Shown one piece after another: positions 18,528 through 43,305 of a stretch of DNA of 64,000 nt. The notes under the pieces were generated by a model. The model was not told the origin of the DNA, searched no databases, and saw only the letters and a list, made by a program, of their open reading frames with translations. Source of the stretch: Monocercomonoides exilis PA203 (Eukaryota; Protista; Preaxostyla). A program made the translations under genes and the position numbers. Location: positions 1,488,001 to 1,552,000 of the forward strand of contig LSRY02000017.1 of assembly GCA_001643675.2 (NCBI GenBank), read 5' to 3'. Every line of letters starts with the position of its first letter. The stretch's first letter is position 1.

Positions 18528-23511
<4,984 letters not shown>

Positions 23512-24385
23512 AAATTCAGATTGGTTTCTATGTTTATATTCTTTGTTTTTGAAGGCTTGCATGCTTTGTAATTGTATCACTATAACCTCATAACATCAAC
23601 ATATGTTTGTTTTCTTGCTGCGAAATTGGAATTTAACGTTTATTTTTTCTAAGCTTCATCTTCTGCTGCAATGGATGAATGACTTACCTTTGTTCTTAAG
23701 TAAACTTTTATGAGAACATTTTTCTTTCATTTCATTTTTTTCAATATTAGTCATATTGGAAGCGAAAATAGTATCAGAATAAATCTTCTTTTTGATGTTT
23801 CATTGAATTCAAAGAGCAAAAAACATGAGCTTTGAATTAAAACAATTCCATTTTGTGAGAAAAACATTTTTAACACCTTATATTTTGTTGACTGTTATTT
23901 CGTCGAGAAATGACAAAGCACATGAACAAGTATTTTGTCTTTGCAAATTGGAATTCACAATTTAAATTTTTAGACTTTGAAAAAATGCCAAAATATGAAA
24001 AGAACAAAAGACATTCATTACAAATTAGTTCGTTATGAAGTAATAGAATTCGGTGTTTTGCATGTTTTTTTTCTTGAACTGTATGAAAATAAGTTAAATG
24101 ATTAAAAATCTAACTCGACTGTGTTTTTATGACTCACATTCAAAATTAAACACAACAATTGTTTGTAAAAGAGAAATATTTAGTTAACACAGTCAAAAAA
24201 AAGAAAAAGAAAAAGAAAAAGAAAAAGAAAGACGTTATTCGCTCAAAATGAAAATATGAAAAATGATAAGCATAAACTTACATTCACCATCGTTCAAAAC
24301 TTACAAAGAAAAAAATTATTTCAAAGCATCAACAGAATTAGAGTATATTTTTTGGGAGAAAAATAATTAATGCTATTGACCTCAG

Positions 24386-25551
24386 TTAAACTGCACCCAT
24401 TTTGTCTACATCTTTATATCCCGATTTTGACTTCAGGCAAGGCGACAGGATGAACTTCACCCCATCAATCACAAGTCCTGGCACAGCCAGCCAGAACCGA
24501 ACAAATGGGATGATTTCGATCCCTTCCTTCTTCAGCCCAAACTTCTGAATATCCACAAACACATTGCCATCATTGTCATCATTGTCATCATTGTCATCAT
24601 TGCACCCAATTCCATTCGCATGCCCAACCACAAGCACAAAATAAAAAGCACAAAAACAAAAATCATAATTAATACGGAAGATAGAAAAGAAAAAGGAAAG
24701 AAAAGAAAAGATTGCAATGGTAAATATGAAATGGATCTCTCCTTCTCTCTCACTCTCTCTCCTTCTCTCTCTGTCACACCATGATTGGTATTCCTGCCGC
24801 AAAGTACAAAACAAGCAGCACCGACAAAATAATCAGCATGATCGATCCAAAGCTCAGCTTTTTGCTCTTTGGATCCTTTTTCGGATCTGGTTTGTTGGGA
24901 TCTGGCTTGTCCGGATCGGGTTTGTCTGGATCTTCAAGTGGACATCCGCAGGGCGAACGATGTGTAACAGTTATATAATAGTTTCTACAAAGTTTGAATT
25001 TTCTTATGAATCGCAACAACAAGCACAAAAGCAGTACCGATCAACTAGCGTTGGTTTAGATGTTTCTTTGTCGCAGACAACTTTTATTGTAAATGATCCA
25101 TCTTGAATTGCGTATGATTTATCTAAATGTTTCATAAATGTTTAAAAATGAAACGAATATATTTCCAATATCTTAAACATATTTTTCAAAAAGGAAATTC
25201 AAACATGTGAGTGAAAATCCTTCTTCGTCATCAAGCAATTTCGGGTCCTCTGTTTCAATTTCAGCAATGCAGTAGCATAAACTGGATATTGATAATGCAA
25301 CGCATTCTTGGTCACAGTTTGAAAAATCGTCTATTGATACATTGGAGTGAACATTCCAATAAACTTGTTCATCCTTATCTTTTGCTTGATATGGATCAGT
25401 TCTTTTGTCAAAAATAAATGAATAATCAATGAAAAATCTTAAAATTGCGATACCCATCCTTTACCAGTCCAGTTATATTGAAGCTTTTTCCTTCAATTTT
25501 CAATACTTCACTCTTCACTGAGACAAAAAGCAAAAATAACAACACAGACAT
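24386..25551 (-). CDS. ATG27 / cation-dependent mannose-6-phosphate-receptor-like type I membrane protein, copy A
   Basis: Signal peptide MSVLLFLLFVSVKS; Cys-containing MRH-like lumen (VYWNV...NCDQEC...LCYC...KVVCD...PCGCP); (DKPDP)n stalk; TM SFGSIMLIILSVLLVLYFAAGI; tail EGIEIIPFVRFWLAVPGLVIDGVKF, typical of ATG27/M6PR; YKDV sorting motif. Confidence 0.75.
24413..24905 (-). repeat. ~493-bp near-identical inverted repeat, copy 1 (partner 42786-43278)
   Basis: The reverse complement matches 42786-43278 across the stalk end, TM exon, whole last intron and last exon. Only one mismatch was seen (24894/42797). The spurious 81-aa ORFs at the two loci are identical. Confidence 0.95.
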
Positions 25552-25738
25552 TTTTGATCTTCTCCTTTATATAATCTTTTTCAAGATTATCGATCAAAAC
25601 AAATTTTTCAAAACCGAACAGTAATATTAACTAACCATTTCTAATTTGCAACTGAAACAATAGAAAACAATGGTTAATTACAAATGTATCAATAATATTT
25701 TGTAGTTATAAGGCATTCTCAATTCAAACAATATTTAG

Positions 25739-26142
25739 ATTACAGATATCGCATAAAATACCGAACATCGCAAAATATACCGGACAAGATCGATTTCACA
25801 ATAACCACAAGAGGAATAATTCTGACATTTTTCCTCAAAATACATCTCATCAATACAAACTCATTTGATATACAAAACATTCAAAATATCCTCATTTGTG
25901 CTCAGAAAAATTATTCATCTAAATCTCGGAGAAATAGAATTTTGAGTTTCTCCGAGATTTAAAAAATTACTCATTTCTGAGCACAAATAAAGCTGAAGTG
26001 AAGTATTGTTTTTTAAATGTGTTTGTTTTGACGAGATGTATTTTGAGGAAAAATGTCAGAATTATTCCTCTTGTGGTTATTGAGAAATCGATCTTGTCCG
26101 GTATTTTGTGCGATGTCCGGTATTTTATGCGATATCTGTAAT
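25739..26142. mobile_element. Imperfect foldback palindrome (~400 bp), MITE-like, non-coding
   Basis: ATTACAGATATCGCATAAAATACCG... pairs with ...CGGTATTTTATGCGATATCTGTAAT. The inner stem AAATCTCGGAGAAA/TTTCTCCGAGATTT closes a 12-nt loop (25935-25946). No clear TSD, so mobility is inferred only. Confidence 0.6.
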
Positions 26143-26437
26143 TTCTCAAACATAAACACATACGCAATTTGTTGGAATATATATTTTAATAAAAATTCTC
26201 AAGATTAAAGCAAGATAAATGCAAATGATGATTCAAAAATGTGAATGAATGTTCGAAATGCTCAAAATAAAAAATTTTTTTTGAAATTTCTGTCTTTAAA
26301 AAGCTATTCCTTAACATATTTTTTCTTTGTGATTATTGACAATCAAAATTCGTTTTTCGGTGGGAGGGTTGATTGAATTCACTTTGGAAGCAATTAGAAA
26401 AAAAATTATTCAATAAAAACGTTTGGCCAGAGGAGAC

Positions 26438-27451
26438 TTAGGGCCAACTTTTTAATGGGACTTTTTCCCTTATTGGCACTTTTTTTGTTTTTGACTGCCA
26501 ACTTTCAACAAACGTTGATTGGCTTTCAGTACTTCAAAAAACGTTTTTTACAAGTTTAACACAATTTATTTACAGTTTGTTTTTTAATTTTTGCTTATTA
26601 CACATTGAGAAATTACGTTTTTTTGTTAAATTTGAAAGGACTTTTACCAGCCAACTAGGCAACGTCCAAGAAATTGGATACATGTTTTGAATAGCAAATA
26701 CTATTATCTAACTACTTTTAAATTCTTTTTTTTCATAAACACTTTTTTCTTGTTTTTTTCACATTTCATTTTTTTAACAACATTCTAACATAAAACCGAT
26801 TATTTCTTTGTTAATATAATGAAATGATAAAAATAAAAATTTGATATGAAAAACAAATAGTCTAATAATAAAGTATTGGAAAAATGAAACATTAATTTTT
26901 TCTATTTAACTAAAACGGACAAATGGCGCTTTCTTAAAATAATCGATGATCAAGTTTTTGTAAAAAAGTTAAGTTCTTGACAAATAGTAAAAATTAATGT
27001 TTCATTTTTCCAATACTTTATTATTAGACTATTTGTTTTTCATATCAAATTTTTATTTTTATCATTTCATTATATTAACAAAGAAATAATCGGTTTTATG
27101 TTAGAATGTTGTTAAAAAAATGAAATGTGAAAAAAACAAGAAAAAAGTGTTTATGAAAAAAAAGAATTTAAAAGTAGTTAGATAATAGTATTTGCTATTC
27201 AAAACATGTATCCAATTTCTTGGACGTTGCCTAGTTGGCTGGTAAAAGTCCTTTCAAATTTAACAAAAAAACGTAATTTCTCAATGTGTAATAAGCAAAA
27301 ATTAAAAAACAAACTGTAAATAAATTGTGTTAAACTTGTAAAAAACGTTTTTTGAAGTACTGAAAGCCAATCAACGTTTGTTGAAAGTTGGCAGTCAAAA
27401 ACAAAAAAAGTGCCAATAAGGGAAAAAGTCCCATTAAAAAGTTGACCCTAA
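26438..27451. repeat. Near-perfect long palindrome: 470-bp arms (26438-26907 and 26982-27451), 74-bp spacer
   Basis: Arms were compared by eye and are reverse complements with only two mismatches, each near an arm end. The ends read TTAGGG...CCCTAA. Confidence 0.93.
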
Positions 27452-28033
27452 TAAAACGGGACAAAATTCTTGCTTTTATGAAAAAAACAAATATTCGTTC
27501 CAAACTTTTTCCACTTTCATATCATAGCAAGTCAAACATTATCATACAAAAATGTTTAGAAAGTTAAAAAAAATGTGACATTTATTCGGAAACTCTGAAT
27601 GGAACAAAATTCATAAAGCAAAAAATATCGTCCCAAACCTTGGAACAGATATAGGGCTTATTTTTTCCATTTATGAAAAAAAGAAAACTCATATTTGCTC
27701 CCGACTTTTTCTGAGAAAAAATAGAAATGAAAGTTAAAAAAAAATCATCTTTATTCTTCTCATTAAATAACTAAAAAACAACGTTATCGAGGAATATCCA
27801 TGTTTTTTTTCATTCAAAATTATTATTTCTCGAATTCAATTGAAATTCATTTATTTCTTAACAAAAAAGTTTAATTTCATTCAAAAATTTCACAAATAAA
27901 CAAACATGATGAATTAAAACGATCAATAATTCAATAATTTGAAAAGTTAAGATCATAAGAAATCCCATTTTTTATTATTTTAAAAAACAAACTTGAAACT
28001 GTAAAGAAATATACATATATTTTCGCAAGTGAA

Positions 28034-31000
28034 ATGAAGATTACATGCTTTAACGTTGTATTATTCTTCATTTGCATAAAGAATGTTCAAGATTGCTTCT
28101 CGGTTGTATCAACAAGATCACACCAAATTTCAGCAAATGCTCAAATAAAATCAATGTTGGGGTTATCAAACAAACAAAATGAATTTGAACTTGCCTCATC
28201 AACAAATGACAGTCACTCGTTGAATTCAAAAAAAGAAATAGACTTCAAAGATAATGAAACAATAATTCCCGAACAAAGCACTTTCCTGAAAGATAACAAC
28301 AATCAACAAAAACATGAAGATGAAACATTTGCTAACTGGGCAAAAACTTATAATTCAGTTCTTTTTTGGAAGAATGTTTCATTGAATAAAGCAGTTATTT
28401 CATCAAATTTAATACATTCCAATTGTTCATTTGAATTGAATAAAGTATTCTTTCAAAATGAACATTACCAAAAATTTTTCTTGAATTCAATCAACTCAAA
28501 CATTTTCGTAAAGGAATCCACTTTCATTTGTAATGACTGTTCAATTCAGACCCCTTTTAACATTTCAAGTGGAATAATATTCATAACGAACATCAGCATC
28601 ATTCATAACGATCATTTGAACAATCCATTTTCACTTGTAGTAACATCAGTCAATGTCTCTTCTAGAAATAAATTAACCGGATCAGTATTGATAAGCAATT
28701 GCAAATTCTCTTCAATGACTTCATCTTGCAATCACTCCCTGTTAGGAAGCAAGTATTTTTATCAAGTCAAAACAAAGCATTGCATATTCACGAATATCAC
28801 GGAAAACCAATGCGAAAAACGAATCATTCATCAGCTCCATACGGTTCAGACAAATATGATAGATAATTGTGAATTCATTGATTGTGAAAGACCTTTTTAT
28901 GGAGTTGTTGTTGAAGGTTCAACCTCAAACGAATTATTTGCATTTAACAGTTCTTTTGAACGTTCTTCTGGAACAATAAAAAACACAGATTTTCTTACCA
29001 CAAGAGGATCATTCGCTGAAGGTGAAACAATATTTGAAGAATGCTCTTTTACAGGATGCACTTCACTTCATGGAGGTGCAATTACAGTATTAAAAAATGG
29101 AGTTTTAAAGATCAAAAGTTGTTCGTTCTCAAAATGTAATTGCACATACACTCGTAGGTATGCATATGGAGGAGCAGTTTTCTGTAATGAAACAAATTGT
29201 GAAATTCACAACACAACATTTTTTTATTGTGTTGGAGTTGAGAATTATTCAATCGGAGGAGCATTTATTCACACACATAATGGGTTGTCTTTAATCAAGG
29301 GATGCAGTTTTATTGGATGTGAAGCGGCATTTGGTGGAGCAATTGCATGGGATGAAGGAGGAAGCGGATGTGCTTACGATTCAACATTTGATAACAACAA
29401 AGCAAGAACAGGCTATGCAGGGACTGTTTTTCTTCAAGATCAAAAAGTTATGTGCAATTTTTCAAATTGTTCAGTGTTGAGAGGATACTCACCACTAGGA
29501 GCAGCTGGAATTGATACTGCTGTTTCTTATAATGAATACAGATTTTCAATTAACTTCTGCTTTTTTGCGGAAAACAAAATGGAACAAGAGATGTATGCTG
29601 CGGACATTTTTATTGAAACGTCGTTCGAGCCTGATTATGGAAAGAATTTAATAACAAATTGCTATTCACTCTCCACCGCAAAAAGAAGAGTGGTTGTTTG
29701 TTCAAATTACAATGGGCAATGCGAAGATAATGACAATGAGAAGAATTCATGGCTCCCTATTCAACCAATTGAAATTTGTATAAAAGGATCAGGTACAAAT
29801 ATTTGCACATGCGGAAGAGAAGGTTCAGAATGCAAGACAGTAGCATATGGGATAACACTATGGAGATCTGATATGAAGCAAAATATCATTCTTGCAGGAG
29901 AAGAATTTATTGAAGATGAAATTTTATTAAATGGAAAGAGTTTCATTTTCGTTGGATGTTCTGACAAAAAGACAAAACTCAAATGCTTGGAGTCATCTTC
30001 AAATGAATGCCTTCTCGTCATTTCAAATGGATCTCTTACTGTTAATACAATATCTTTTGTGAGTGCTTTCAATAGAACAGTTATACGAATCGGATCAAAC
30101 GGAATAACTAGTTTCAATGACTGTTCATTTGAAAATGAAACTTCACTTATGGATTGTTCATGCAAAACACTAATTTGCATCGACAGTGGAAGTTTAAAAA
30201 TGGTGAACTCAAGAATGTGTAATTTTAATTTTGAGGCAGCAAGCTGCATATCAATTATTAATGCTCAGAAAATTGAAATTTCAATGTGCACTTTTGAAAA
30301 TATTATGAATGATGGAAATGGAGGATGTATTAACGCTGATTATCCTGATGTTGGGAATGAGCACAGTATTGATATAAATGGAAGCAAATTTATAAATTGT
30401 AACATTACCGGAACAGAAAACGAAGGAGGAGGAATGTTCATATCAATTTCCAATGGATGTTCGTTTAATTTAGCGAACACTGAATTTGAGAAGTGTGTAG
30501 CACCATTTGATATCGAAGAAAAAGGAAAGGGTGGTGGCTTGATGATAATTTTGAAGGATTTATCGTTTGAGTTCAATTTATCAGGAGGAATATTTGGCGA
30601 AAACAATAACGCAAAATATGGAAAAGACGTGTTCATTCGATCAATAAATCTTCTATCAGCCATCAATATTAACAGATTTTTATTTTGGAAAGAAGACGAT
30701 GCTTCAGATAAACTTATGGGAATGGAAAATTCCATACCTGACGTAGTTATTCCATTGGAGATTTATTTTCTACAACTTAAATCTGCAGTTAAAGTTGCAG
30801 AAAATGGAGTGGATTATGCAAAATGCGGTTTTGAATCATTTCCGTGCCAAACACTGGGATATTCATTTTTCAGAAAGAAAGGATTTATAAAAAATGTTGA
30901 GATATATGGAAGTGTTCAGGTTAATGAGAAAATGATAATGAATGATCTTGGATATTGCATCAATGGAGGAGAATCAATGAGCATTATGCGAATCAACAGA

Positions 31001-34000
31001 AACGAGAATAATGATGAGTCAAATGGGATGATCGAAATAAGTGTATCATGTACCTTTAAAAGCATCAAGATGATGTTGTGCAATTCAATAAGACCCTATT
31101 CTTCACTATTTAAAGTCAACGCTGATTGCCTAAACATTGACAATATAATAATTGAAGGAAATTCAGAAGAGTGCAATGGGCTTGAAGTTGAATATAGTAT
31201 CATCTCTATTTTGAATGGACATGCTATTGCAAATCAATTATTTATTGATGGAATTACTATTGGTGATCATTCCATCATTGAAGTGATTGGCGGGGATTCA
31301 ACCGCAACTACTATCGCTTGCGAGTGGCGGAACATTCATTCATCTGGGCAAATTGGATTAATTCATGTAACAGAACACGGATTTATTGATGCAAATGATA
31401 CTAATATTTGTGGATGCATATTTGAAGAAGGATGTGGTATTAAATTGAATTGTCCAGGAATAGCAACAATTGGTAACATTTCATTTTTGAATAATACCAT
31501 TTCAAAAGGAAATGGAACATGCATCAACTGCCAAGATTTAGATAATAAGACAGATAAGATCACAATATATGATTGCAATTTCGAAGAATGCAAAGTTATG
31601 AGTGATGAAGATGGAGGAGGTGGACTTTTCTGTTCGTTATCAAATTCGTCAGAAATTATTATTTCATCCTGTCATTTCAACAGATGCGAAGCACAAACAG
31701 ATCAAATGATTAGCTTTGGAGGTGGAATTCTTTTGGATAGCAATGAAGCAGATTGCTTTATTTTAAGAGATCTTGATTTTTCTTATTGTAGTGCAAAATT
31801 CGGAAAGAATATGTTTATTCAATGTTCTGATTTATTCAATTCTGTAACAGAAGCTGCATTTGACTTTAATGTTTCCAAAGGATGGGAAGATGATAACCTG
31901 TTTGTTGGAAAGGACAAGATATTTGAGGGTTTTGACATCACCAGGCTTCTTCTTGAATACACCTCTGAACAGATATTTGTAAGTGAAACAAAGGGATTGG
32001 ATACTTTACGATGCGGAAGAGAAAATGAACCATGCTTGACTGTACCAAAGTGCATTGAACACTTTCGACATTCTGTTGACCCAAACCCTCTCACAAACTT
32101 TTCTTTTTCGCAAGCTGCATTAATAGACCCTTCTTTGTTCAAACTATTTGTGATTGAAGATGTTCTTGTCGATTGCAAGCTTGATTTATCTGGCATATGC
32201 ATCACATCAGCGATGCCACTTGAAAGGAGCTTTTTAAGATTCAATCCGATTTTTAATTGCGAAGCAAAAGGAGTTATAGATTGTGAATCCGTTATTGAGA
32301 ACAGCAGAGACATGACAATCAGTAAGCTGAATTTGAGTTTCACAAATGTTAATGAACTGGACGCTGAAGGAGTCATTTGGACTTCAAACGGACTTTTCAT
32401 ATTTAGCGAATGTGATGTATATGATATTTCCAATAACAAGTTGAAATGTTCATTCATCATTTGCACATCAGGAAAATGTGAAATAATTGCGAGTTCATTC
32501 AGCCAACTGAATTGCGAAACCTATTTTATTGTTTCGCATTGCGTTGAAGAGTTGTCTATCAAAAATATTTCAATAATAGGAGTAACACTGAACGGAATGA
32601 GTTTTTTCAAGCATTGCTGTTCATACAGTGACGAAACGGAGAGCGTTAGAAACGAGAAAATGATTGTGTATAAATTGTGCGAGTTTGAGAATATCACACA
32701 CAAATCAGAAACAGAACCAGCCATAATTTTTTGTGATTGCAACAGTAATTGTTATAGAAACATTATCATTGAGAATACAACTTTAAAGAAATGTGGAAGT
32801 GAATGGAGCAAAAAAGGAGGTGGGATGATGATACAATTGAACGAAAACAATGGAATGCAAATTCATAATTCAAGTGTAATCGAATGCTATTGTGCATTGG
32901 ATGGACGTGGAGGTGGGATGTATTTGGACTGCATTGAGAAAAAGGAAATACTGTTAAACTTTGCCATTACAAACGTAACATTCATTAGGAATCTTGGATA
33001 TTGTGGAAGAGATGTTTATGTGAAATGTCAATCCATTGAAAAACAATTAAGCGATGTGCAATTCCAAATTAACTTCAATCTACCATTTGACAGAGAGTTA
33101 GCGATCTGGGGATGTACAATGGATGCATTTGAAGATGAGGAGGATCTTCTTCCTTATTTGATTGTTTTCAAAGATGAAATGATATTTGTATCAAATGTAA
33201 TGGAAAACAACGCTGACAATCGTCAATGCGGAAAACAAATAAGTCCATGCACATCTGTGGATATTGGAATGTCACATGTAATTCCTTCAGTTTACAGTCA
33301 CTTGCTTATTTATAGGAGATCCTCTGTGAATGGCGAAGGATATGTCAGTGATGTCACAATCAAAATGCTCGATGCTGATCAGCATGATGGAATTATTGTA
33401 TTGAATAACACAATTAACAAGAAACGTGATGCTTTATTCCTTTTAAATTCCACAGTGAATATATACAATGTATCATTTGTTTTCTCCAACAAATTTTGTA
33501 GTGAGCATGTTGGACTTCTTTGGATGGATAGAGGAAATTTGAACATTGACGGGGTTTGCTTTCGTCAGGATATCGATGAGTACATGAAGAACGAGAGAAG
33601 TTTGAATTGTTCATTTGTTATTGTTACCCAAGGGTCTATGAGTATACGTGATTGCTCAGTATCTAACATCAGAACAAAAGAATGCTTCGTTGATGTGAGA
33701 AATGGAACAACGGTTAGGATAGAAAGAGTGTTATCCAATGCGATTCATTTGTATAAATCGTTCATAATTATTCAAAAAACATTAAACTTATCTCTTTCCA
33801 ACGTAGAAACATTTAACGAATATTCAGAAGGAAACATGATTCAACTAAATAACGTTGAAAATGCCATTGTACAAGGACTGACAATTGATAAATGCTCAGG
33901 TAATGGCTTATTCTTTGAAACAAAGAATATTCAAAATATGGCAATTTCAAAAGTGAAAATATCCTATTCGACATTTCAATGGGGATGGCATATCATCAAG

Positions 34001-36445
34001 GCAGAGGAAGACTTTGATTCAGAAAGAAAACATTTAGAGATTAAAATTGAATCAAAAGAAAAAGAAAGCGCAAAAGAAAGCTTTAACGACATCAAAGAAG
34101 AACAAGTCGAGATTAGCCAAATCGAAGGAAATGGAGTGCAGATTAAAAAAGAACCTTTCATTTCTGCTGTTAATCTTCAAACTTTTTCCACATTCTCCCA
34201 TATTAGTTTGATGAACATATCCACAGAGTCACTTGAATCAAGCGTCTTTTGTGTTAAGAACAACAGCGAAAAAGTGGAGTTTATTAACTGTTCCATTGTG
34301 AATTGTAAATCGCCAATTGAAACGGGAACTCTTGTTAATGTAGATGAAAGCACAAATTTGTTCATGAATTTGTGCTTATTTGACGGATACGAAAGTGAGT
34401 CAAAAAGCGTTAATAAATATACTTCGAAAGAACATGATCGTAACATTTGCTGGTGGAATGGGTCATCAGTAGAATTCTCTAGAACGACAGCACAGATGAA
34501 AGATACAGAAATTACAAACTGTTCAAAGGGTGCACTTTCACTGATACGCACAAATATATTTATTGAAGATGGAAAATTCAATCACAACAATCCTTCATTC
34601 ACCGGATTTGAATCTATTCATCGCAACATATTATGCAGTGGCAACGGATCCTTATCAATAAAAAGTTTGAAAGGCGATCCAGGAATGGATGCAAATTCTT
34701 CCTTATGGATTTTGAATGATGGATGTAAGTTATCAGGAATCGCAGCTGATCGGCCATCTGCTTTTTTCATTCCACTGCTTGAGAAAGCAGAAACAGTTTG
34801 CAGTGAAGGAGAAACGATAGTTACGTTATTTGGAAGAGAACTATTTCCTTGTAATCTAACAGCTAGTATCGTTATTTCAGAAAATGCAAGTGAAACGTTC
34901 TTGAGCAAACCACTTGAAGACGAATGCTTTGAAGATGAAAATAAAGTGCATTTAACAGTAGAAATAGCACTTAATGAATTGTCCAATGAAACAACAGTTG
35001 GTATATTTTTAACTTTTGGCAGCACTGATGCTCCATCACAAACAGAGGCATTCATCCTGAAGAACAAAACAGATTCGAAGATTGATGATGAAGCGAAGGT
35101 CGCGAAAGGAGCAAATGGCTCAACTCCTTCGTTATCACTGATAATTATTTTTCTTTTCGCTGTTTTGTTTTTGATTGTTCTTATTGTTGCAATCGCCTTT
35201 ATTGTTCGTTGGAGAAAGCAAAAGAGGAGAACAGAAGAGCTGGAGTTGATTGTTGAAGACACAGTGAAAAAGGATCCGAAGCTGATTGAGATGGTGACAA
35301 TGGAGACGTCTCCCGAGGAACAGTGGAGGAGAGCAGAGAAAGAGGCAGAGAAGAAGAATGAAGAGAGGATCAAGAAGAGAGTATACGAGAAAAGTTTGGG
35401 ACATTCAGAATCATCAGAGCATCTTCTTTCTGAGAGTGGATCAACAGAATATATTCTTGGGAGAGATTCAGACAAGATCCCTGATTGGGCATTAGAAAAG
35501 GAGGAGGAGGAAGAGATAAGAAAGCAGACTCCATCTCCATCCATTTCATCCACTTCAACGACTGATTCAGATTCAACTTTTGTTCGATCAGAGAGTCTGT
35601 GTCCAACCACTTCGTCGATGTCAAACCTCGTGGATGCTATAAGCTGTTCATCGCCTCACGAAAAGCTGATTGTTGATCTGAGGGATTCACTTTTCATGCT
35701 GCTTCATGGAAGAAATGAAAAGAAAGAGATGGCGATTGGTACTCTGCAAGAGAGGGAGCAGACAGGTGCCCAGATCCTGTTCTGGGTGGCGAATGGGGCA
35801 CTCCACTCATTTGACGAAATGGAAAACCCTCTTTCCTCTTTGGCCAATCTGAGTCCTCACATTGTGTTGTTCTCAGAACATATGGTCATCTGCATTGTGA
35901 TGCACTCCGACTTATCATCTGACGATGATTCAGATTCTTCATCTATTTCTTCATCAACTGTTGTCACATCTGCCAGCGATGATGATGATGAATACTCTCT
36001 TCCTTCATCAGCCTTTGAGGAGGAGGATGATTTCAAAAAAGAGTGTCTAAGGTGGAAGGCGCCAGAACTGCTGATGAACAAGAAGATGGGGGCGACGAAG
36101 GAGTCGGTGGCATTCTCAATTGGGATGATGCTGTGGGAGTGTCTGACACTGAATATTCCGTTTGGGGAGTATGAAGCTGTGATTGCTGGAGATAAGATTG
36201 TGAATGGAGAAAGGCAAGGTTGTAAATCCATTGAAGGCTGTTCACTCTGTGGGTTGATTGGAAGGTGTCTAAAACAGTCGGGAGAGGAGAGGCCGACGCT
36301 GAACGAGCTGAAGCGGGAGTTTATCCAACGCTTTCCAACTGGAGCTGTGATGCTCACTATTTCTGATGCAATAGGGCTTCATTTGTGTTCAGGAAATCAT
36401 AACCACATCAATGTGAAAAAAAGTTCAAAAAGCTCATCTTTCTAA
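28034..36445 (+). CDS. Intronless 2803-aa type I surface receptor: beta-helix (GGA[I/V], GGG) Cys/Asn-rich ectodomain, one TM, degenerate kinase C-lobe (pseudokinase)
   Basis: Signal-like N-terminus; repeated HGGAI/YGGAV/GGG(M/L/I) turns; four CG-x4-(P/E)C-x-(T/S) modules; TM ~35138-35211 followed by RWRKQKRR; RWKAPELL...SVAFSIGMMLWECLT..IPF...CL......RPT kinase subdomains VIII-XI, without HRD or DFG. Confidence 0.88.
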   Translation: MKITCFNVVLFFICIKNVQDCFSVVSTRSHQISANAQIKSMLGLSNKQNEFELASSTNDSHSLNSKKEIDFKDNETIIPEQSTFLKDNNNQQKHEDETFANWAKTYNSVLFWKNVSLNKAVISSNLIHSNCSFELNKVFFQNEHYQKFFLNSINSNIFVKESTFICNDCSIQTPFNISSGIIFITNISIIHNDHLNNPFSLVVTSVNVSSRNKLTGSVLISNCKFSSMTSSCNHSLLGSKYFYQVKTKHCIFTNITENQCEKRIIHQLHTVQTNMIDNCEFIDCERPFYGVVVEGSTSNELFAFNSSFERSSGTIKNTDFLTTRGSFAEGETIFEECSFTGCTSLHGGAITVLKNGVLKIKSCSFSKCNCTYTRRYAYGGAVFCNETNCEIHNTTFFYCVGVENYSIGGAFIHTHNGLSLIKGCSFIGCEAAFGGAIAWDEGGSGCAYDSTFDNNKARTGYAGTVFLQDQKVMCNFSNCSVLRGYSPLGAAGIDTAVSYNEYRFSINFCFFAENKMEQEMYAADIFIETSFEPDYGKNLITNCYSLSTAKRRVVVCSNYNGQCEDNDNEKNSWLPIQPIEICIKGSGTNICTCGREGSECKTVAYGITLWRSDMKQNIILAGEEFIEDEILLNGKSFIFVGCSDKKTKLKCLESSSNECLLVISNGSLTVNTISFVSAFNRTVIRIGSNGITSFNDCSFENETSLMDCSCKTLICIDSGSLKMVNSRMCNFNFEAASCISIINAQKIEISMCTFENIMNDGNGGCINADYPDVGNEHSIDINGSKFINCNITGTENEGGGMFISISNGCSFNLANTEFEKCVAPFDIEEKGKGGGLMIILKDLSFEFNLSGGIFGENNNAKYGKDVFIRSINLLSAININRFLFWKEDDASDKLMGMENSIPDVVIPLEIYFLQLKSAVKVAENGVDYAKCGFESFPCQTLGYSFFRKKGFIKNVEIYGSVQVNEKMIMNDLGYCINGGESMSIMRINRNENNDESNGMIEISVSCTFKSIKMMLCNSIRPYSSLFKVNADCLNIDNIIIEGNSEECNGLEVEYSIISILNGHAIANQLFIDGITIGDHSIIEVIGGDSTATTIACEWRNIHSSGQIGLIHVTEHGFIDANDTNICGCIFEEGCGIKLNCPGIATIGNISFLNNTISKGNGTCINCQDLDNKTDKITIYDCNFEECKVMSDEDGGGGLFCSLSNSSEIIISSCHFNRCEAQTDQMISFGGGILLDSNEADCFILRDLDFSYCSAKFGKNMFIQCSDLFNSVTEAAFDFNVSKGWEDDNLFVGKDKIFEGFDITRLLLEYTSEQIFVSETKGLDTLRCGRENEPCLTVPKCIEHFRHSVDPNPLTNFSFSQAALIDPSLFKLFVIEDVLVDCKLDLSGICITSAMPLERSFLRFNPIFNCEAKGVIDCESVIENSRDMTISKLNLSFTNVNELDAEGVIWTSNGLFIFSECDVYDISNNKLKCSFIICTSGKCEIIASSFSQLNCETYFIVSHCVEELSIKNISIIGVTLNGMSFFKHCCSYSDETESVRNEKMIVYKLCEFENITHKSETEPAIIFCDCNSNCYRNIIIENTTLKKCGSEWSKKGGGMMIQLNENNGMQIHNSSVIECYCALDGRGGGMYLDCIEKKEILLNFAITNVTFIRNLGYCGRDVYVKCQSIEKQLSDVQFQINFNLPFDRELAIWGCTMDAFEDEEDLLPYLIVFKDEMIFVSNVMENNADNRQCGKQISPCTSVDIGMSHVIPSVYSHLLIYRRSSVNGEGYVSDVTIKMLDADQHDGIIVLNNTINKKRDALFLLNSTVNIYNVSFVFSNKFCSEHVGLLWMDRGNLNIDGVCFRQDIDEYMKNERSLNCSFVIVTQGSMSIRDCSVSNIRTKECFVDVRNGTTVRIERVLSNAIHLYKSFIIIQKTLNLSLSNVETFNEYSEGNMIQLNNVENAIVQGLTIDKCSGNGLFFETKNIQNMAISKVKISYSTFQWGWHIIKAEEDFDSERKHLEIKIESKEKESAKESFNDIKEEQVEISQIEGNGVQIKKEPFISAVNLQTFSTFSHISLMNISTESLESSVFCVKNNSEKVEFINCSIVNCKSPIETGTLVNVDESTNLFMNLCLFDGYESESKSVNKYTSKEHDRNICWWNGSSVEFSRTTAQMKDTEITNCSKGALSLIRTNIFIEDGKFNHNNPSFTGFESIHRNILCSGNGSLSIKSLKGDPGMDANSSLWILNDGCKLSGIAADRPSAFFIPLLEKAETVCSEGETIVTLFGRELFPCNLTASIVISENASETFLSKPLEDECFEDENKVHLTVEIALNELSNETTVGIFLTFGSTDAPSQTEAFILKNKTDSKIDDEAKVAKGANGSTPSLSLIIIFLFAVLFLIVLIVAIAFIVRWRKQKRRTEELELIVEDTVKKDPKLIEMVTMETSPEEQWRRAEKEAEKKNEERIKKRVYEKSLGHSESSEHLLSESGSTEYILGRDSDKIPDWALEKEEEEEIRKQTPSPSISSTSTTDSDSTFVRSESLCPTTSSMSNLVDAISCSSPHEKLIVDLRDSLFMLLHGRNEKKEMAIGTLQEREQTGAQILFWVANGALHSFDEMENPLSSLANLSPHIVLFSEHMVICIVMHSDLSSDDDSDSSSISSSTVVTSASDDDDEYSLPSSAFEEEDDFKKECLRWKAPELLMNKKMGATKESVAFSIGMMLWECLTLNIPFGEYEAVIAGDKIVNGERQGCKSIEGCSLCGLIGRCLKQSGEERPTLNELKREFIQRFPTGAVMLTISDAIGLHLCSGNHNHINVKKSSKSSSF

Positions 36446-37406
36446 CATTAGTATCAATTATATCATTGAGTCATAAAAAAATTATCAATAAAAAAGATAA
36501 AAGAGGAGTTAAACAAACAATAGGGAAAAAATAAAATGGAAATAACTTTGATTTTCATTTGATTGTGGAAAAAATGCTTATTTATCGTGGAAAAAACTAA
36601 AAATAAACTCCTTTGTAAAGGAGGAGCAAACTTTTATGAATTAAAAATGAAAATCAATATTCTCAAAGTCTCAATCAAATATTATTAGAACAAACATATT
36701 CTTTTCACATCTATTGACAATTTTCAAATCACGAAAAAATGTTAAGACAACTTCGAATAACTTCCATTTTGTTCATAACAGTTGCAATAAAGTCCTTATT
36801 TAAATTAAAGTATTGTACGCTCAATTGATCAAAAACACTCAAGGCATTTTGAACGAAATTCTAACTGTTAAATTTCATCTGATTGTCACACAATTCCGTC
36901 ATTTAAGCCCAACTTATCTCTCTAATAGATTATCCTTCATTCATGTGAGCGGGAAAGTTAACGATCCTTGGGATATTTTTCTGTATTCTTAAATAATTTA
37001 TAAAAACTCACAATTAATGAATTAAAAATGGTTTCTTTGTCAATTCTTTGAAGAAATTGTTTTTGGAATATTTTCCAAAAGATACAAGAAACAAATAAAG
37101 GATGCTTAATAATAATTGTCAATAACTTTAAATTGTTAAAACAAAAATGCAGGAATAAAAACTTTTTATCAAGTTAAAAAACTTAACTCCATCATATTCA
37201 ATTCCACAACGAACTTGTTCGTCTTTTTCTTTTTTCCAAGTTAAGCAAGTTAAAATAATAACTGTTTCAAACATTACTTTTCAACTAGCAATAAACTTTT
37301 AAATTTTTAGATAAAACCGGAAATGAAAACAAATAAAAATGAAGAGTTATTTTTTTTTTTTCTGTTTTCTTTAAAACAAAAATATGCATGAGCTAAATCT
37401 TCGTTA

Positions 37407-40400
37407 TCACTCTCCTTGTCCAGCTGCTATGGATGAAACATATTCCGCTTCTCTTTGAGTGCTCCACTGAGCAACCAAATTTGCAAGGTTGCCAGATTTG
37501 CCAGTTTCTTCGAAGACAGAAGAGATGAGACTGACAAAATTGGAACTGCGAAGAATCTGCTCTTCCTGATAATTCCCCAAATGCATTCAGAATCATTGAG
37601 AAAAGAACAACAAAACAACAAAAAAAGCATCACGCACAAAAGACAGTGAAAAAAAAAATGAGTTGTAAAAAATCTAACTGAGTCAAGAATAGCATGATAC
37701 CTCCCATGATTTACGCTTGATTAGCTCATTGAGCATCCAGGTGTCTATTTCTATTAGACGACGCTCGATCGACTGTGGCATTTGTGAAACACAATAAATG
37801 TTGAATAGAAATGAACGAAAAAAGGAAAGAAAGATGGAAAGAAAGAAGTCAGTTGGAGGGTTTTTAAAAAAAAGTTAAAAAACAAAATTCAGCAGATAAA
37901 TTAAAATTTCTATAAAAAATACGTATTTCCAAAACAGTTTCAACAAAACAAACAAATAAATGAACAAAAAGCAGAAAAGCATGTTTTAGTTGTATTTTCA
38001 TAATTTTTATTCACACAACACACAATCACTTAAAAAAACAACAGAGGCATACCGAAATACACTCACGAAGAATTTCAATGCATTTTGTCAATGGCAATGA
38101 ATTACTGCTATTTGAAGAAGAAGAAGAAGAAGAAGAAGAAGCTGAGCTTTTACTTTCAACAGCTCTTTTCGAAGCAAATGGATCGCCTGCCTCTTCTGTC
38201 CTCTGCTCGACTGGATTGATTGGGCACAGCAGCTGCTGCAGATAAGAGACATACCACTTCTCAAAGCCACACAGCGTCGGCAGCTTTGCAGGCAGCGAGT
38301 TCTCAACAAGCGTCGCATACGTCGTTCCTGTCGGGCGGGCGATAGGCTCATCACTCGAGGCACTTTCTGTGCAGGCTGCTGTGTTCTCAGAAGAAGAAGA
38401 AGAAGAAGAAGAAGAAGATGATGATGATGAAGGAACAGAATCATTAGCTGAAGCAGTCGGGGTGTCTGGATTAGGTTCATTTATTGTACCAAACTGGGAA
38501 GCAGCTGATGTGATGTTTGGGAGTGAAAGATAAGGATCCAACAGAACAGGAAACGGAAACTCTTTTGGCGGTTTTATGTTAGAAATATCAGAAATGTCAA
38601 ACGCATCGTCATTTTCTGCTGGATTCTCTTTCTCCTTCTCTTTCTCTTTCTCTTTCTCTTCCACAGCATCTGTCGATGTGTGGCCATCTGTGTCTACGGT
38701 GTACTCTCTCTCAGCTTCTCGCTTCCACCTTTTGTCGTCTTCAGCCCGTCTCTTCGCTTCTTCCTCTGCCCATCCAGCAAATTCACTGCTGAAATCAGCA
38801 GCCTCCTTCTTTTCATCCATCGCTGCCTCTGCTTTCTTCTTCTCTTCCTCCTCCTTTGCCAACAGCTCATTCATCTTCTCTTCGATTCTTTCCTTTCTTC
38901 TCCACAACATCTTCCGCCGGCAGCTCATTTCAGGGCGGATGTCTCTGCCAATTGCAATCAGAGAGAATGACAGCTCATCGTCGCCCATCGACTTGATGAA
39001 GTCGCGGATGCGCTCCAACACCAGGCGGACCCAGGGTGCTATTGTGGGTGTGGTGGATGAGGATGAGGATGAAGAGGAAGAGGAAGAGGAAGAGGAAGAG
39101 GAAGAGGAAGAGGAAGAGGAAGAGGAAGAGGAAGAGGAGGAAGAAGAAGATGATGATGATGGCGATGATGACGATGATGAAGTTGAAGAAGATGAAGAAG
39201 GTGAAGAAGATTCATTCAGAGCTTCAATGCTTGCTGCGAGTGCTGCCTGCATAAGCTCCTCATCATTCATTGCTTCTTCGTCGATGACTCCGTTTTTATT
39301 CTCCACGTCCATCTGGATGGACTCGCCTGTTGAAGAAGAACCGGATGTTTCGCTGTTTCTTGTTTCGGAGATATTCCCAGAGGCAGACGACGACGAAGCT
39401 GCCTCTTCAGAGGATGACACTTCAAGACTCGCAGCAAGTGCAGCAGCAATCATCTCGTCTTCAGTCATTTCTATTCCATTTATCTGATTAATAGAATTTC
39501 CGTCGATCGAACTAGACTGTGTTGAAGAACTGGGTGACTCAGAAAGATGATGCTGAGAGTCAACTTTTTGATTTGTTGGCTTGATAATAACAGGGCATTT
39601 CTTAAGACCATCCAATTCAACAACTTCCCCTCTTTCATTCATCAATGGAACAAAGCCAACATAATGATATGCATCTTCACCTTTTGAAGGATCTTGCGTT
39701 TCTTCATGAGCAAAAAGTGCTTGACTAAGAATATCATTAAAAATAAAAGAATTGAAAAACAACTTTATACAGTAAAATTTCAAACCCTGTAAAAGAATTA
39801 TGCGCTGTTCGAATTTCTTCAATAGATTGAAGAGATGCCCCTCGTTCTTCAGGAGGCAATGCCATTAAAAAATCTTTTGCATTTGATAAAACTGGACCAA
39901 GTGTTAGATTATTTGAAAGTTTTAAATTCAACAAAATGGATATAAGTGCATGAGTGCAACAAGAATTCTTTGCTTCTTGTCGTGCAAAAAACACATCTGG
40001 AAGATAATTAGCAGGGGTGTTAATAAGCTTGTAAGTATTTCCTACAACTGTATTTTCTTGTTGAGCGTTTTGCCTCTGCTTTTTTGAATAATTAAACAAA
40101 AAAACAAGTCCAAATATTTCTCTAAAAAATGAAATGTCTGTTGAAAAAAAGAAGATAAATTATTTCTAAAAAAATACCCAAGCTCTGCAAATCCGCTTTC
40201 TTCGAGTCCAACAACTTCCGTACACTCAAAACCTTTAGTTCCCAATTTCTCAAGCAATAATGTAAAAACCCCTTCAATTAAACATTTATGTTAAAACGTA
40301 AAAATAAATTGTAACTCAAACCAGGATCAGATTCTATAGTACCCCAATCGGATTCTATAGCACCTTGAGCTGACGGTATAGCAGCAGATGGGATACTTTG

Positions 40401-40412
40401 TCCAGGACCCAT
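37407..40412 (-). CDS. UCHL5: Ubiquitin C-terminal hydrolase, UCH37/UCHL5-type (peptidase C12), with large inserts
   Basis: WGTIESDPGVFTLLL; FGLVFLFNY; FFARQ...NSCCTHALISILLN; IRTAHNSF; DAYHYVGFVP...ELDGL (Cys/His/Asp triad intact); FSLIAI; C-terminal EEQILRSSNFVSLI (UCH37-like tail). Confidence 0.82.
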
Positions 40413-40600
40413 GAATTTTTATATATTGGGCGGTGATCATATTCTTCATATCGTTTTTATTCTTTCATTACAAATCAAATTTTGATGGACTCTTTATATT
40501 TATTTTTGAAATAACTATACGTTAATAATCAATAGATATGTTTATGGGAATACCCATTAGTGATATAAAATTTTTCGATCGAAATATCTGTTGGTCAACA

Positions 40601-42046
40601 ATGACGGAAATGATAAAAAATTTAATTCGCCCCCTTGTGTCAACTAAAACAGTTTCAACTTTCTATACAGACGGAAAGTTAACTCCAGAAGAATTTGTAG
40701 CTGCTGGTGTGCTTCATCCTGTTGATTACCTTCACTTGAAATTACAAATCATTTGCTTCTATTTTCGCTTCAGGTGATATATTATGCAGACACTGCCCCA
40801 CATGGAAATGGTTGAAATTAGCTTTTGAAAAATTGATTTGTATTTTCAAAAATGTAATAATTCCGCAATCTTTAGGGAATCAGGAGACCCCAAAAAGAAG
40901 CTTGCTTTCCTTCCTCCAGAAAAGCAATTTCTTGTAGCGCGTGGAATTCCTTGCAGAACGCGTGCAAAAAGTGCATATGGCGAAGGGGATGGACTCAAAG
41001 TTGGAGCAGGCTCATCTGGAGAGGCAGCTGAAGATGAGGACAATGGATTCAACATTGTGACAAAAGAGGAAGGATGTTTGAGCTCTTTTCAAATGTGAAC
41101 GTTTTTGTTTTAGAATTAATAATTTCCAGCTTCAGGAACATCTTCGTCATCAGTGCCATCTTCTGCGACACCTGAAGATGATGACGATGAAATTGAAGAT
41201 GATGACGATATGCCATCCGTTGCAGAATCTTCTGATCCAGTTTGCTAAAAGGATTTTCTTGATGTTGTATTTTTATTTATTTATTTTTTTTAATTTTGAA
41301 TAGAGCTCTGCTGCACCAAATGCTGCTCCATCTCGTCCAAAATGTCGTGTTTATGAAGCAAGCCTAACATACGATAAACTTTACACATCACCTCGTTTTT
41401 GGCTTCGTGGAGTTGATGAAGACGGAACCACTCCATTGACCCAAGAACAAATTTTCGAAGATATCAGCGAAGTCTGTTGCTTTTTAATTTGTTGGGGGAA
41501 AATAATTTATTTACCATTTAATTCAAATACGCTTCTTTCTATTATTTTTATGATTTCTAACCAAATGTGCAAATAACTTAATGGTAAATATTTTAATAAT
41601 GTTCTTTGATTAGGAGCATGCAAAGAAGACAGTTACAATGGAAAAGCATCATCATTTGGACGTGTTGTACGCATCTATTCATCCATGCAAACATGCCCAT
41701 ACAATGAAAATGATGATGGAAATGGCAAAGGAAGCTAAAAAAGAACAAAACAAATTGAAAGCTGAAGCAAGTGGAAGCGCACCATCAGAAGGTTAGCACC
41801 TTTTCTTTTGAAAATATATTTATTTTTGTTTATAAAAATTGTTCTACTACTTTTTTTTCTATTATTTCACTCTTTATTATTAGATGATTCAGAAGAGCCA
41901 ATTCCTGTTGATCAGTACTTCATTTATTTCTTGAAATTTATTTCAACAATTTGCCCGGTTTGTTTTATAATTATTACAGTTGTTTTTAATAATAAATTTC
42001 AATTTAGACAATGGATATCGATTTTACTGTTTCCGCAAAATTGTAA
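40601..42046 (+). CDS. ATG3: Autophagy E2-like enzyme ATG3; multi-exon
   Basis: [85 protein letters not shown] (catalytic HPC); VDQY...FLKFI....PT..IDFT. Confidence 0.95.
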
Positions 42047-42146
42047 ATCAAGCGTATATTCTATTTCTTTGTTTTTTCAAATATCTTTTTTTTCCCATTT
42101 TCATAACTAAATAAAGGGTGAGCTTTGATCTCTCAATTTTTTTAAA

Positions 42147-43305
42147 ATGAAGATTTTATTTCTAATACTTGTATATAATTCTATTTGTAAACTTCATAAT
42201 TTTGATGGAAAAGATTTTGATCTTGATCCACTGATTAAAACAGGGTATGATTTCACATTCATTAGATTTCAACTTTTGTGATTGTTTACCTTCAGTACAA
42301 ATCGTTATAGTGGAAGATACAAAGGGGATGATGTATATTGGAATATCTTGTCTAATGTATATGTTGGTGATGTTGAAGGATGTGAAGATAAGGAACAAGT
42401 TGCTGTCACGGCATCAGAAGGTTTATGCTATGGAAGAGCATCATTGGAAAATCAAACCAGTTCTCTTATCAATTCTACGGGAGGACTTTTGCTAAATTGT
42501 ATCATTTTTTTCATTTATTATTATTATCTTGATTATTTTTTGATGAATTTCGTGTAATTTAGATACATCTTCTGAAATGTTTCTTGCAAGTTTTGCAATT
42601 AAGATTGTATGCTCAGAAGAAGAATCCACGCCATCAATAACCTCCACGTTTGAATTCATGATTATTCGTGCATTGTTTCTTTCATTTGGCTTTATTCATT
42701 CATTAAATTATTAAGAAAAGAGCATTTTGTTGTCACTATGGAAACAAAATATGGATGCCCTGTTACAAAACCTGATCCCAATAAACCAGATCCCAATAAA
42801 CCAGATCCGAAAAAGGATCCAAAGAGCAAAAAGCTGAGCTTTGGATCGATCATGCTGATTATTTTGTCGGTGCTGCTTGTTTTGTACTTTGCGGCAGGAA
42901 TACCAATCATGGTGTGACAGAGAGAGAAGGAGAGAGAGTGAGAGAGAAGGAGAGATCCATTTCATATTTACCATTGCAATCTTTTCTTTTCTTTCCTTTT
43001 TCTTTTCTATCTTCCGTATTAATTATGATTTTTGTTTTTGTGCTTTTTATTTTGTGCTTGTGGTTGGGCATGCGAATGGAATTGGGTGCAATGATGACAA
43101 TGATGACAATGATGACAATGATGGCAATGTGTTTGTGGATATTCAGAAGTTTGGGCTGAAGAAGGAAGGGATCGAAATCATCCCATTTGTTCGGTTCTGG
43201 CTGGCTGTGCCAGGACTTGTGATTGATGGGGTGAAGTTCATCCTGTCGCCTTGCCTGAAGTCAAAATCGGGATATAAAAACGTCGATAAAGGCGAGGCCA
43301 TATAG
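42147..43305 (+). CDS. ATG27 / M6PR-like type I membrane protein, copy B
   Basis: Signal peptide MKILFLILVYNSIC; FDLDPL; VYWNI...GCEDKEQ...LCYG; KIVCS; KYGCP; (PDPNK)n stalk; TM and tail identical to copy A except the final YKNVDKGEAI. Confidence 0.75.
42786..43278 (+). repeat. ~493-bp near-identical inverted repeat, copy 2 (partner 24413-24905)
   Basis: Reverse complement of 24413-24905, including the intron; one mismatch seen. Confidence 0.95.

Follow-up and report, generated by a model that had tools for sequence, protein, structure and literature searches.

In Monocercomonoides exilis PA203, two divergently transcribed genes for predicted CD-MPR/Atg27-like type I receptors, here called A and B, share a letter-identical tract at their 3′ ends that very probably arose by recent ectopic gene conversion between inverted, ancient paralogues. 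Both genes lie in the window, by which we mean the whole 64,000-nt stretch of contig LSRY02000017.1 that was analyzed (assembly GCA_001643675.2, positions 1,488,001–1,552,000 of the forward strand); coordinates below count from its first letter. What the locus carries is an ordinary gene-conversion footprint, and there is no sign of a switch that shuffles receptor parts.

Gene A (24386–25551, minus strand) is modeled as five exons (25551–25454, 25401–25205, 25122–25038, 24984–24780 and 24544–24386) that run from an ATG at 25551 to a stop at 24386, encode 247 amino acids and are separated by introns of 52, 82, 53 and 235 nt. Gene B (42147–43305, plus strand) encodes 246 amino acids, likewise in five exons (42147–42244, 42296–42498, 42563–42647, 42716–42911 and 43147–43305), with introns of 51, 64, 68 and 235 nt. 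All introns are GT–AG and the intron phases of the two genes are the same. Both assignments combine a gene model with exon-wise Pfam matches. Each model has a hydrophobic N-terminus consistent with a signal peptide, a single transmembrane (TM) segment, encoded by exon 4, and a tail that reads GY-K-[DN]-V, which conforms to YxxPhi. RNA runs hold 36% of the words of 23400–26400, which suggests that gene A is expressed.

A repeat search over positions 22000–46000 returned a single long-range inverted pair, formed by arm A (24401–24923, minus strand) and arm B (42768–43290, plus strand), which is 523 nt long, 98% complementary and spaced 17,844 nt from arm to arm. Base-by-base comparison places a perfect core of 481/481 nt within it, positions 42798–43278 of B being equal to 24413–24893 of A. 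The core takes in the 3′ part of exon 4 with the stalk and TM segment, the whole of intron 4, and exon 5 up to …SGYK. Its edges are abrupt: six mismatches fall within the 30 nt that precede the run and four within the 12 nt that follow it, and outside them the global alignment of the two genes drops to 0.45–0.6 per 60 columns, the background for AT-rich DNA. Both edges fall at homologous, in-frame coding positions of A and B. A sharp-edged block of near identity set within diverged homologous sequence is one hallmark of an ectopic gene-conversion tract.

An earlier note, made from the letters of the window, had described two genes facing away from each other about 16.6 kb apart, a near-identical stalk-to-tail block that includes an intron, and last codons that differ again. 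All three statements hold. The 5′ ends, at 25551 and 42147, are 16.6 kb apart, with the block at the outer 3′ ends, and the proteins end in KDVDKMGAV (A) and KNVDKGEAI (B), the last eight codons differing with four residues changed and YxxV present in both. The same note had proposed a genome-wide look for further copies of the block. Such a search, over the whole genome (82.3 Mb in 101 contigs), finds it only at A and B; the next-best matches are 69–76% identical pieces of other members of the receptor family.

The remainder of the two genes is old. The luminal parts show 34% amino acid identity over 140 codons, and the earlier view that only the W and C anchors can be aligned there is therefore too strict. 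Third-position identity in this region is 0.39, versus 0.27 expected by chance from composition. The proposed comparison of synonymous change in the 5′ and 3′ halves can be made by codon counts: among luminal codons that specify the same amino acid, 23 of 48 differ synonymously, versus 0 of the 79 codons of the tract that differ at all. The change is immediate on both sides. Directly upstream of the tract, 6 of 14 conserved stalk codons differ synonymously, which is the background rate, and of the four residues conserved among the eight codons after the tract, three have synonymously different codons. Outside the tract, then, A and B read as ancient paralogues whose synonymous sites are near saturation. 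Within it, intron 4 (24545–24779 on the minus strand in A, 42912–43146 on the plus strand in B; GTGTGA…ATTCAG in both) is identical at 235/235 positions, including microsatellite counts, and contains a 9-nt microsatellite, whereas introns 1–3 of the two genes do not align. Identity that spans intron and synonymous sites alike is a second hallmark of a conversion tract. It points to recent ectopic conversion or recombination rather than to selection on the protein, as the earlier note had argued.

Comparison with the rest of the family leads to the same reading. At least 13 CD-MPR/Atg27-like loci were found in the Oxford Nanopore (ONT) assembly of M. exilis by a six-frame search with the 52-residue tail exon as query; by contig label they are distributed as C11 (three), C5 (three), C16 (two), and C21, C35, C42, C31 and C12 (one each). 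Across the family, amino acid identity is 45–81% in the TM-plus-tail module and 13–41% in the luminal domains. A and B are 100% identical to each other in TM plus tail and reach at best 78–81% with any other member; at the nucleotide level they are 54–70% identical to every other member there, and all other pairs are at or below 78%. Where the luminal identity of a pair is similar to that of A and B (for example C21–C42, 41%), the amino acid identity in TM plus tail is about 78%. In a tree of the luminal parts, A and B group with two genes called C5a and C5b (support 100/98); the branches in this clade measure about one change per site or longer, and the pairing of A with B is not resolved. 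Indeed, the luminal distance between A and B equals that between A and C5a, which sits on another contig. Tract and flanks thus give conflicting family relationships, a third hallmark of ectopic conversion.

The intron within the tract is a genuine family feature. An intron at exactly this site and in phase 0 is present in 11 of the 13 members, where it is 69–142 nt long. The splice junction is supported because two members that lack the intron (C11b and C16b), as well as the transcript-based protein model P0001, continue from the TM helix to the tail without a break and with equal spacing. The first ~100 nt of the intron (24660–24779 in A, the same letters in B) are predicted to fold into a hairpin of about 40 bp with GA-rich and CU-rich strands (−36 kcal/mol, z = −3.2). 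The idea that conservation of an RNA within the intron explains the identity finds no support: all the Rfam matches lie far below their gathering scores (best 28 versus 85 bits), and these many weak, microRNA-precursor-like matches reflect the GA/CU tract hairpin.

The events that produced the tract can be sketched as follows. A break in one gene would have been repaired by homologous recombination, or by template switching, with the inverted paralogue as the template. In this way one gene would have received from the other, at the homologous position and without reciprocal exchange, a copy of about 481 bp that begins in the Pro/Asp/Lys-rich stalk, passes through the TM helix and intron 4 and ends four codons beyond the conserved Tyr region. 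We speculate that repeated Pro-Asp-Pro-Asn-Lys stalk codons at the 5′ edge provided the homology for entry, and that the polypurine/polypyrimidine hairpin of intron 4 perhaps caused the break. Homologous repair of a break as the mechanism, the recency of the event and the lack of a switching function are what we infer from these patterns. The sharp edges favor one event or, failing that, a single final one, although the last of many would look alike.

Other origins of such a block fit less well. Capture by a mobile element was rejected, as the genome holds just two copies and their edges are at homologous in-frame positions. A larger, decayed inverted duplication was rejected as well, since tblastx at 1e-4 detects no similarity of either flank to the other or to the interior. 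Together, the in-frame homologous edges, the lack of similarity among flanks and interior, and the family comparison exclude a mobile element, a recent duplication of the whole gene and selection on the protein.

Several points weigh against recent conversion as we have described it. Conversion is inefficient between sequences that are otherwise about 70% identical, which makes the start of the exchange hard to explain. The comparison covers a single strain, whereas dating the event or naming the donor gene would call for an outgroup. The assembly was built with Canu, followed by Nanopolish and ten rounds of Pilon (PMC8767320), and in a two-copy block of 481 bp those ten rounds could have removed a small number of true differences. 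The last of these points can be extended to the suggestion that differing 3′ ends were homogenized by Canu, Nanopolish or Pilon and that the identity is an artifact altogether. Short reads do map ambiguously in a two-copy block through all ten polishing rounds, and A and B are not among the EukProt proteins matched by the tail query, so that the older annotation offers no independent support. However, polishing cannot turn paralogues of about 70% identity with introns of unequal length into a perfect match of 481 nt that ends at homologous in-frame positions. The ONT reads behind the assembly have an N50 of 8.9 kb (PMC8767320) and easily span a repeat of 0.5 kb, and at most a few real differences would have been lost. 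We regard an artifact as extremely unlikely. The difficulty of starting an exchange would be eased if the genes had been homogenized continuously, as this would supply the high identity that conversion needs. In this scenario of long-term concerted evolution, TM and tail would have been kept identical by conversion that recurred ever since the duplication, possibly with selection for a shared sorting module and diversifying selection on the luminal domains. Yet both edges are sharp and lack any gradient of older tracts, synonymous change in the stalk directly upstream is already at the background rate, and C5a and C5b have not been homogenized although they stand in tandem. These observations make concerted evolution an unlikely, though not negligible, account.

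The remaining alternative is inversion, either by recurrent crossover (non-allelic homologous recombination) or as a programmed process, such that the interior would exist in two orientations and C-terminal ends as well as 3′ untranslated regions (UTRs) would be traded between the receptors. In principle, 481 bp of perfect inverted identity at a distance of 17.8 kb suffices for a homologous crossover, and one and the same repair can end in either crossover or conversion. The geometry set out in the earlier note is also right: a crossover would flip an interior of about 17.8 kb that includes the promoters and luminal parts of both genes. It is the predicted consequence that falls short. Since the two genes already have the same TM and tail, the effect of a flip would be confined to the final eight codons (four residues) and the 3′ UTRs; both tails would keep YK[DN]V, the promoters would move together with the luminal exons, and judged from the sequences no meaningful change of product would follow. 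Pfam searches of the large interior open reading frames (ORFs), in which a heavily spliced gene could be missed, detect a kinase-like receptor, a UCH gene and an ATG3-like gene and no recombinase domain, and the assembly presents a single orientation. The variable/constant receptor cassette, or invertible segment, that the earlier note had envisaged thus finds no support in the identical TM and tail, the YxxV retained in both genes and the content of the scanned interior ORFs. A low-frequency polymorphism of orientation, generated by homologous crossover, is possible. Recurrent or programmed inversion as an explanation of the tract is very improbable, and we give just as little credence to a broader scheme in which the core identity is both maintained by and supportive of reciprocal exchange, the interior is polymorphic in orientation in culture with C-terminal ends and 3′ UTRs swapped, and the genome has a general habit of pairing inverted paralogues. 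Recent ectopic conversion is therefore the reading that we retain.

The interior between the arms (24924–42767, 17.8 kb) holds, besides the 5′ parts of A and B with both promoters and luminal parts, a number of elements and genes. A 404-bp foldback miniature inverted-repeat transposable element (MITE; 25739–26142) with inverted ends of 140 nt lies 190 nt upstream of the gene A ATG; the genome search gave 568 first-look candidates, among them at least 40 full-length copies at 80–88% identity. It is followed by a 1-kb foldback element (26438–27451), a near-perfect palindrome with arms of 479 nt and a loop of 56 nt. The genome search found at least 30 copies of it on many contigs, and it is thus not peculiar to the A/B locus; because several copies are 97–99% identical, it appears to have been active recently. 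A receptor ORF of 2803 amino acids with a kinase-like C-terminal end (28034–36445, plus strand; Pfam) comes next, and then a gene for UCH (peptidase C12; about 38026–40257, minus strand; Pfam), which has a very long, Ser-rich, low-complexity C-terminal ORF. An acidic, Glu-rich ORF opposite the UCH gene is probably spurious. The ATG3-like gene (about 40538–41796, plus strand) is recognized by Autophagy_act_C with 36 bits on the exon that carries the HPC motif. Gene B, on the same strand, is its immediate downstream neighbor, which places a gene for an autophagy E2-like enzyme beside that for an Atg27-like receptor, an adjacency that may be coincidental.

The family to which A and B belong follows a common plan in its 13 loci: a signal peptide, a Cys-anchored luminal exon, a short exon with F-x-C, a stalk-plus-TM exon with W-x-HP-x-GC, and a tail. 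The tail has the pattern IPFV-FW-PGLV-DG-K…SPC…G[YF]xx[VIFM], the terminal G[YF]xx[VIFM] being present in most of the 13 members. Database searches with A and B were made exon by exon, and exons were joined only for counting and alignment; single exons score 12–20 bits, sub-threshold, at the matching positions of the Pfam profiles. Paralogues provide firmer assignments. The tail query matched one protein only, EukProt MONOS_12173 of Monocercomonoides (P0001, equal to C5a), which exceeds the Pfam cut-offs for ATG27 (45 bits, its best match) and Man-6-P_recep (35 bits), and C11b (37 bits) and C16b (29 bits) also exceed that for Man-6-P_recep. A and B have 78% amino acid identity to the P0001 gene over TM plus tail and 33–34% in the luminal part. 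The label M6PR-like used in the earlier note is thus a fair name for what the profiles recognize, and Atg27-like fits equally well. A profile of luminal exon 2 compared with solved CD-MPR structures gave no match by sequence, and a search of the PDB with P0001 was set aside, as it returned only a chance TM match. C5a and C5b lie 7.4 kb apart on the same strand (C5:614328–621891) and are 72% identical in amino acids over TM plus tail. Our literature search returned no paper tying Monocercomonoides to MPR or Atg27.

For a deep-branching, amitochondriate eukaryote, the A/B tract provides a clean natural case, with well-defined bounds, of short-tract conversion between paralogues of great age. It bears on the evolution of the large receptor families of M. 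exilis and on the trust that can be placed in assemblies and annotations of such regions. To cell biologists the family itself may be more useful, as its 13 or more genes exceed the counts reported for parabasalids.

Four kinds of known system invite comparison. MPR families of parabasalids comprise 5–12 paralogues that have a TM helix and a tail carrying YxxPhi (PMC8717582; bioRxiv 10.64898/2026.10.22.760878), and the seven MPRs of Trichomonas vaginalis (TvMPR1–7) have been called the largest set among 53 surveyed species (bioRxiv 10.64898/2026.10.22.760878); the main text of that survey mentions neither Monocercomonoides nor gene conversion. Like these metamonad MPRs, the M. exilis members would be type I proteins in which an MRH domain is combined with a single TM helix and a YxxPhi motif at the C-terminus, encoded by many paralogues in an anaerobic gut protist, whereas each M. 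exilis member has one single, short MRH-like domain and at least 13 were found. With yeast Atg27 (PF09451) the family has in common a lumenal domain of MRH-like type, a single TM helix, and a short tail in which a Tyr motif lies close to the C-terminal end. It differs in that three of the M. exilis paralogues also pass the Man-6-P_recep cut-off, and it is described here from sequence.

In its layout the locus resembles the Hin and Gin switches and the shufflons: its repeats are inverted, lie inside coding 3′ ends and flank a segment that, on inversion, would bring different gene halves together. In contrast to those systems, its scanned interior ORFs show no recombinase, it has no consequential alternative C-terminal modules, and it is a eukaryotic nuclear locus around housekeeping genes that is known from one assembled orientation. 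The closer parallel is ectopic conversion between inverted duplicates, as occurs from arm to arm in the palindromes of the human Y chromosome and between the inverted Hsp70 pairs of Drosophila. Unlike those cases, the A/B tract spans just 0.48 kb within genes whose synonymous sites are otherwise saturated, its arms stand 17.8 kb apart around unrelated genes, and there is no palindrome of whole gene copies. As in those cases, however, inverted copies on one chromosome share an identity that includes non-coding and synonymous sites, next to flanks that have not been homogenized.

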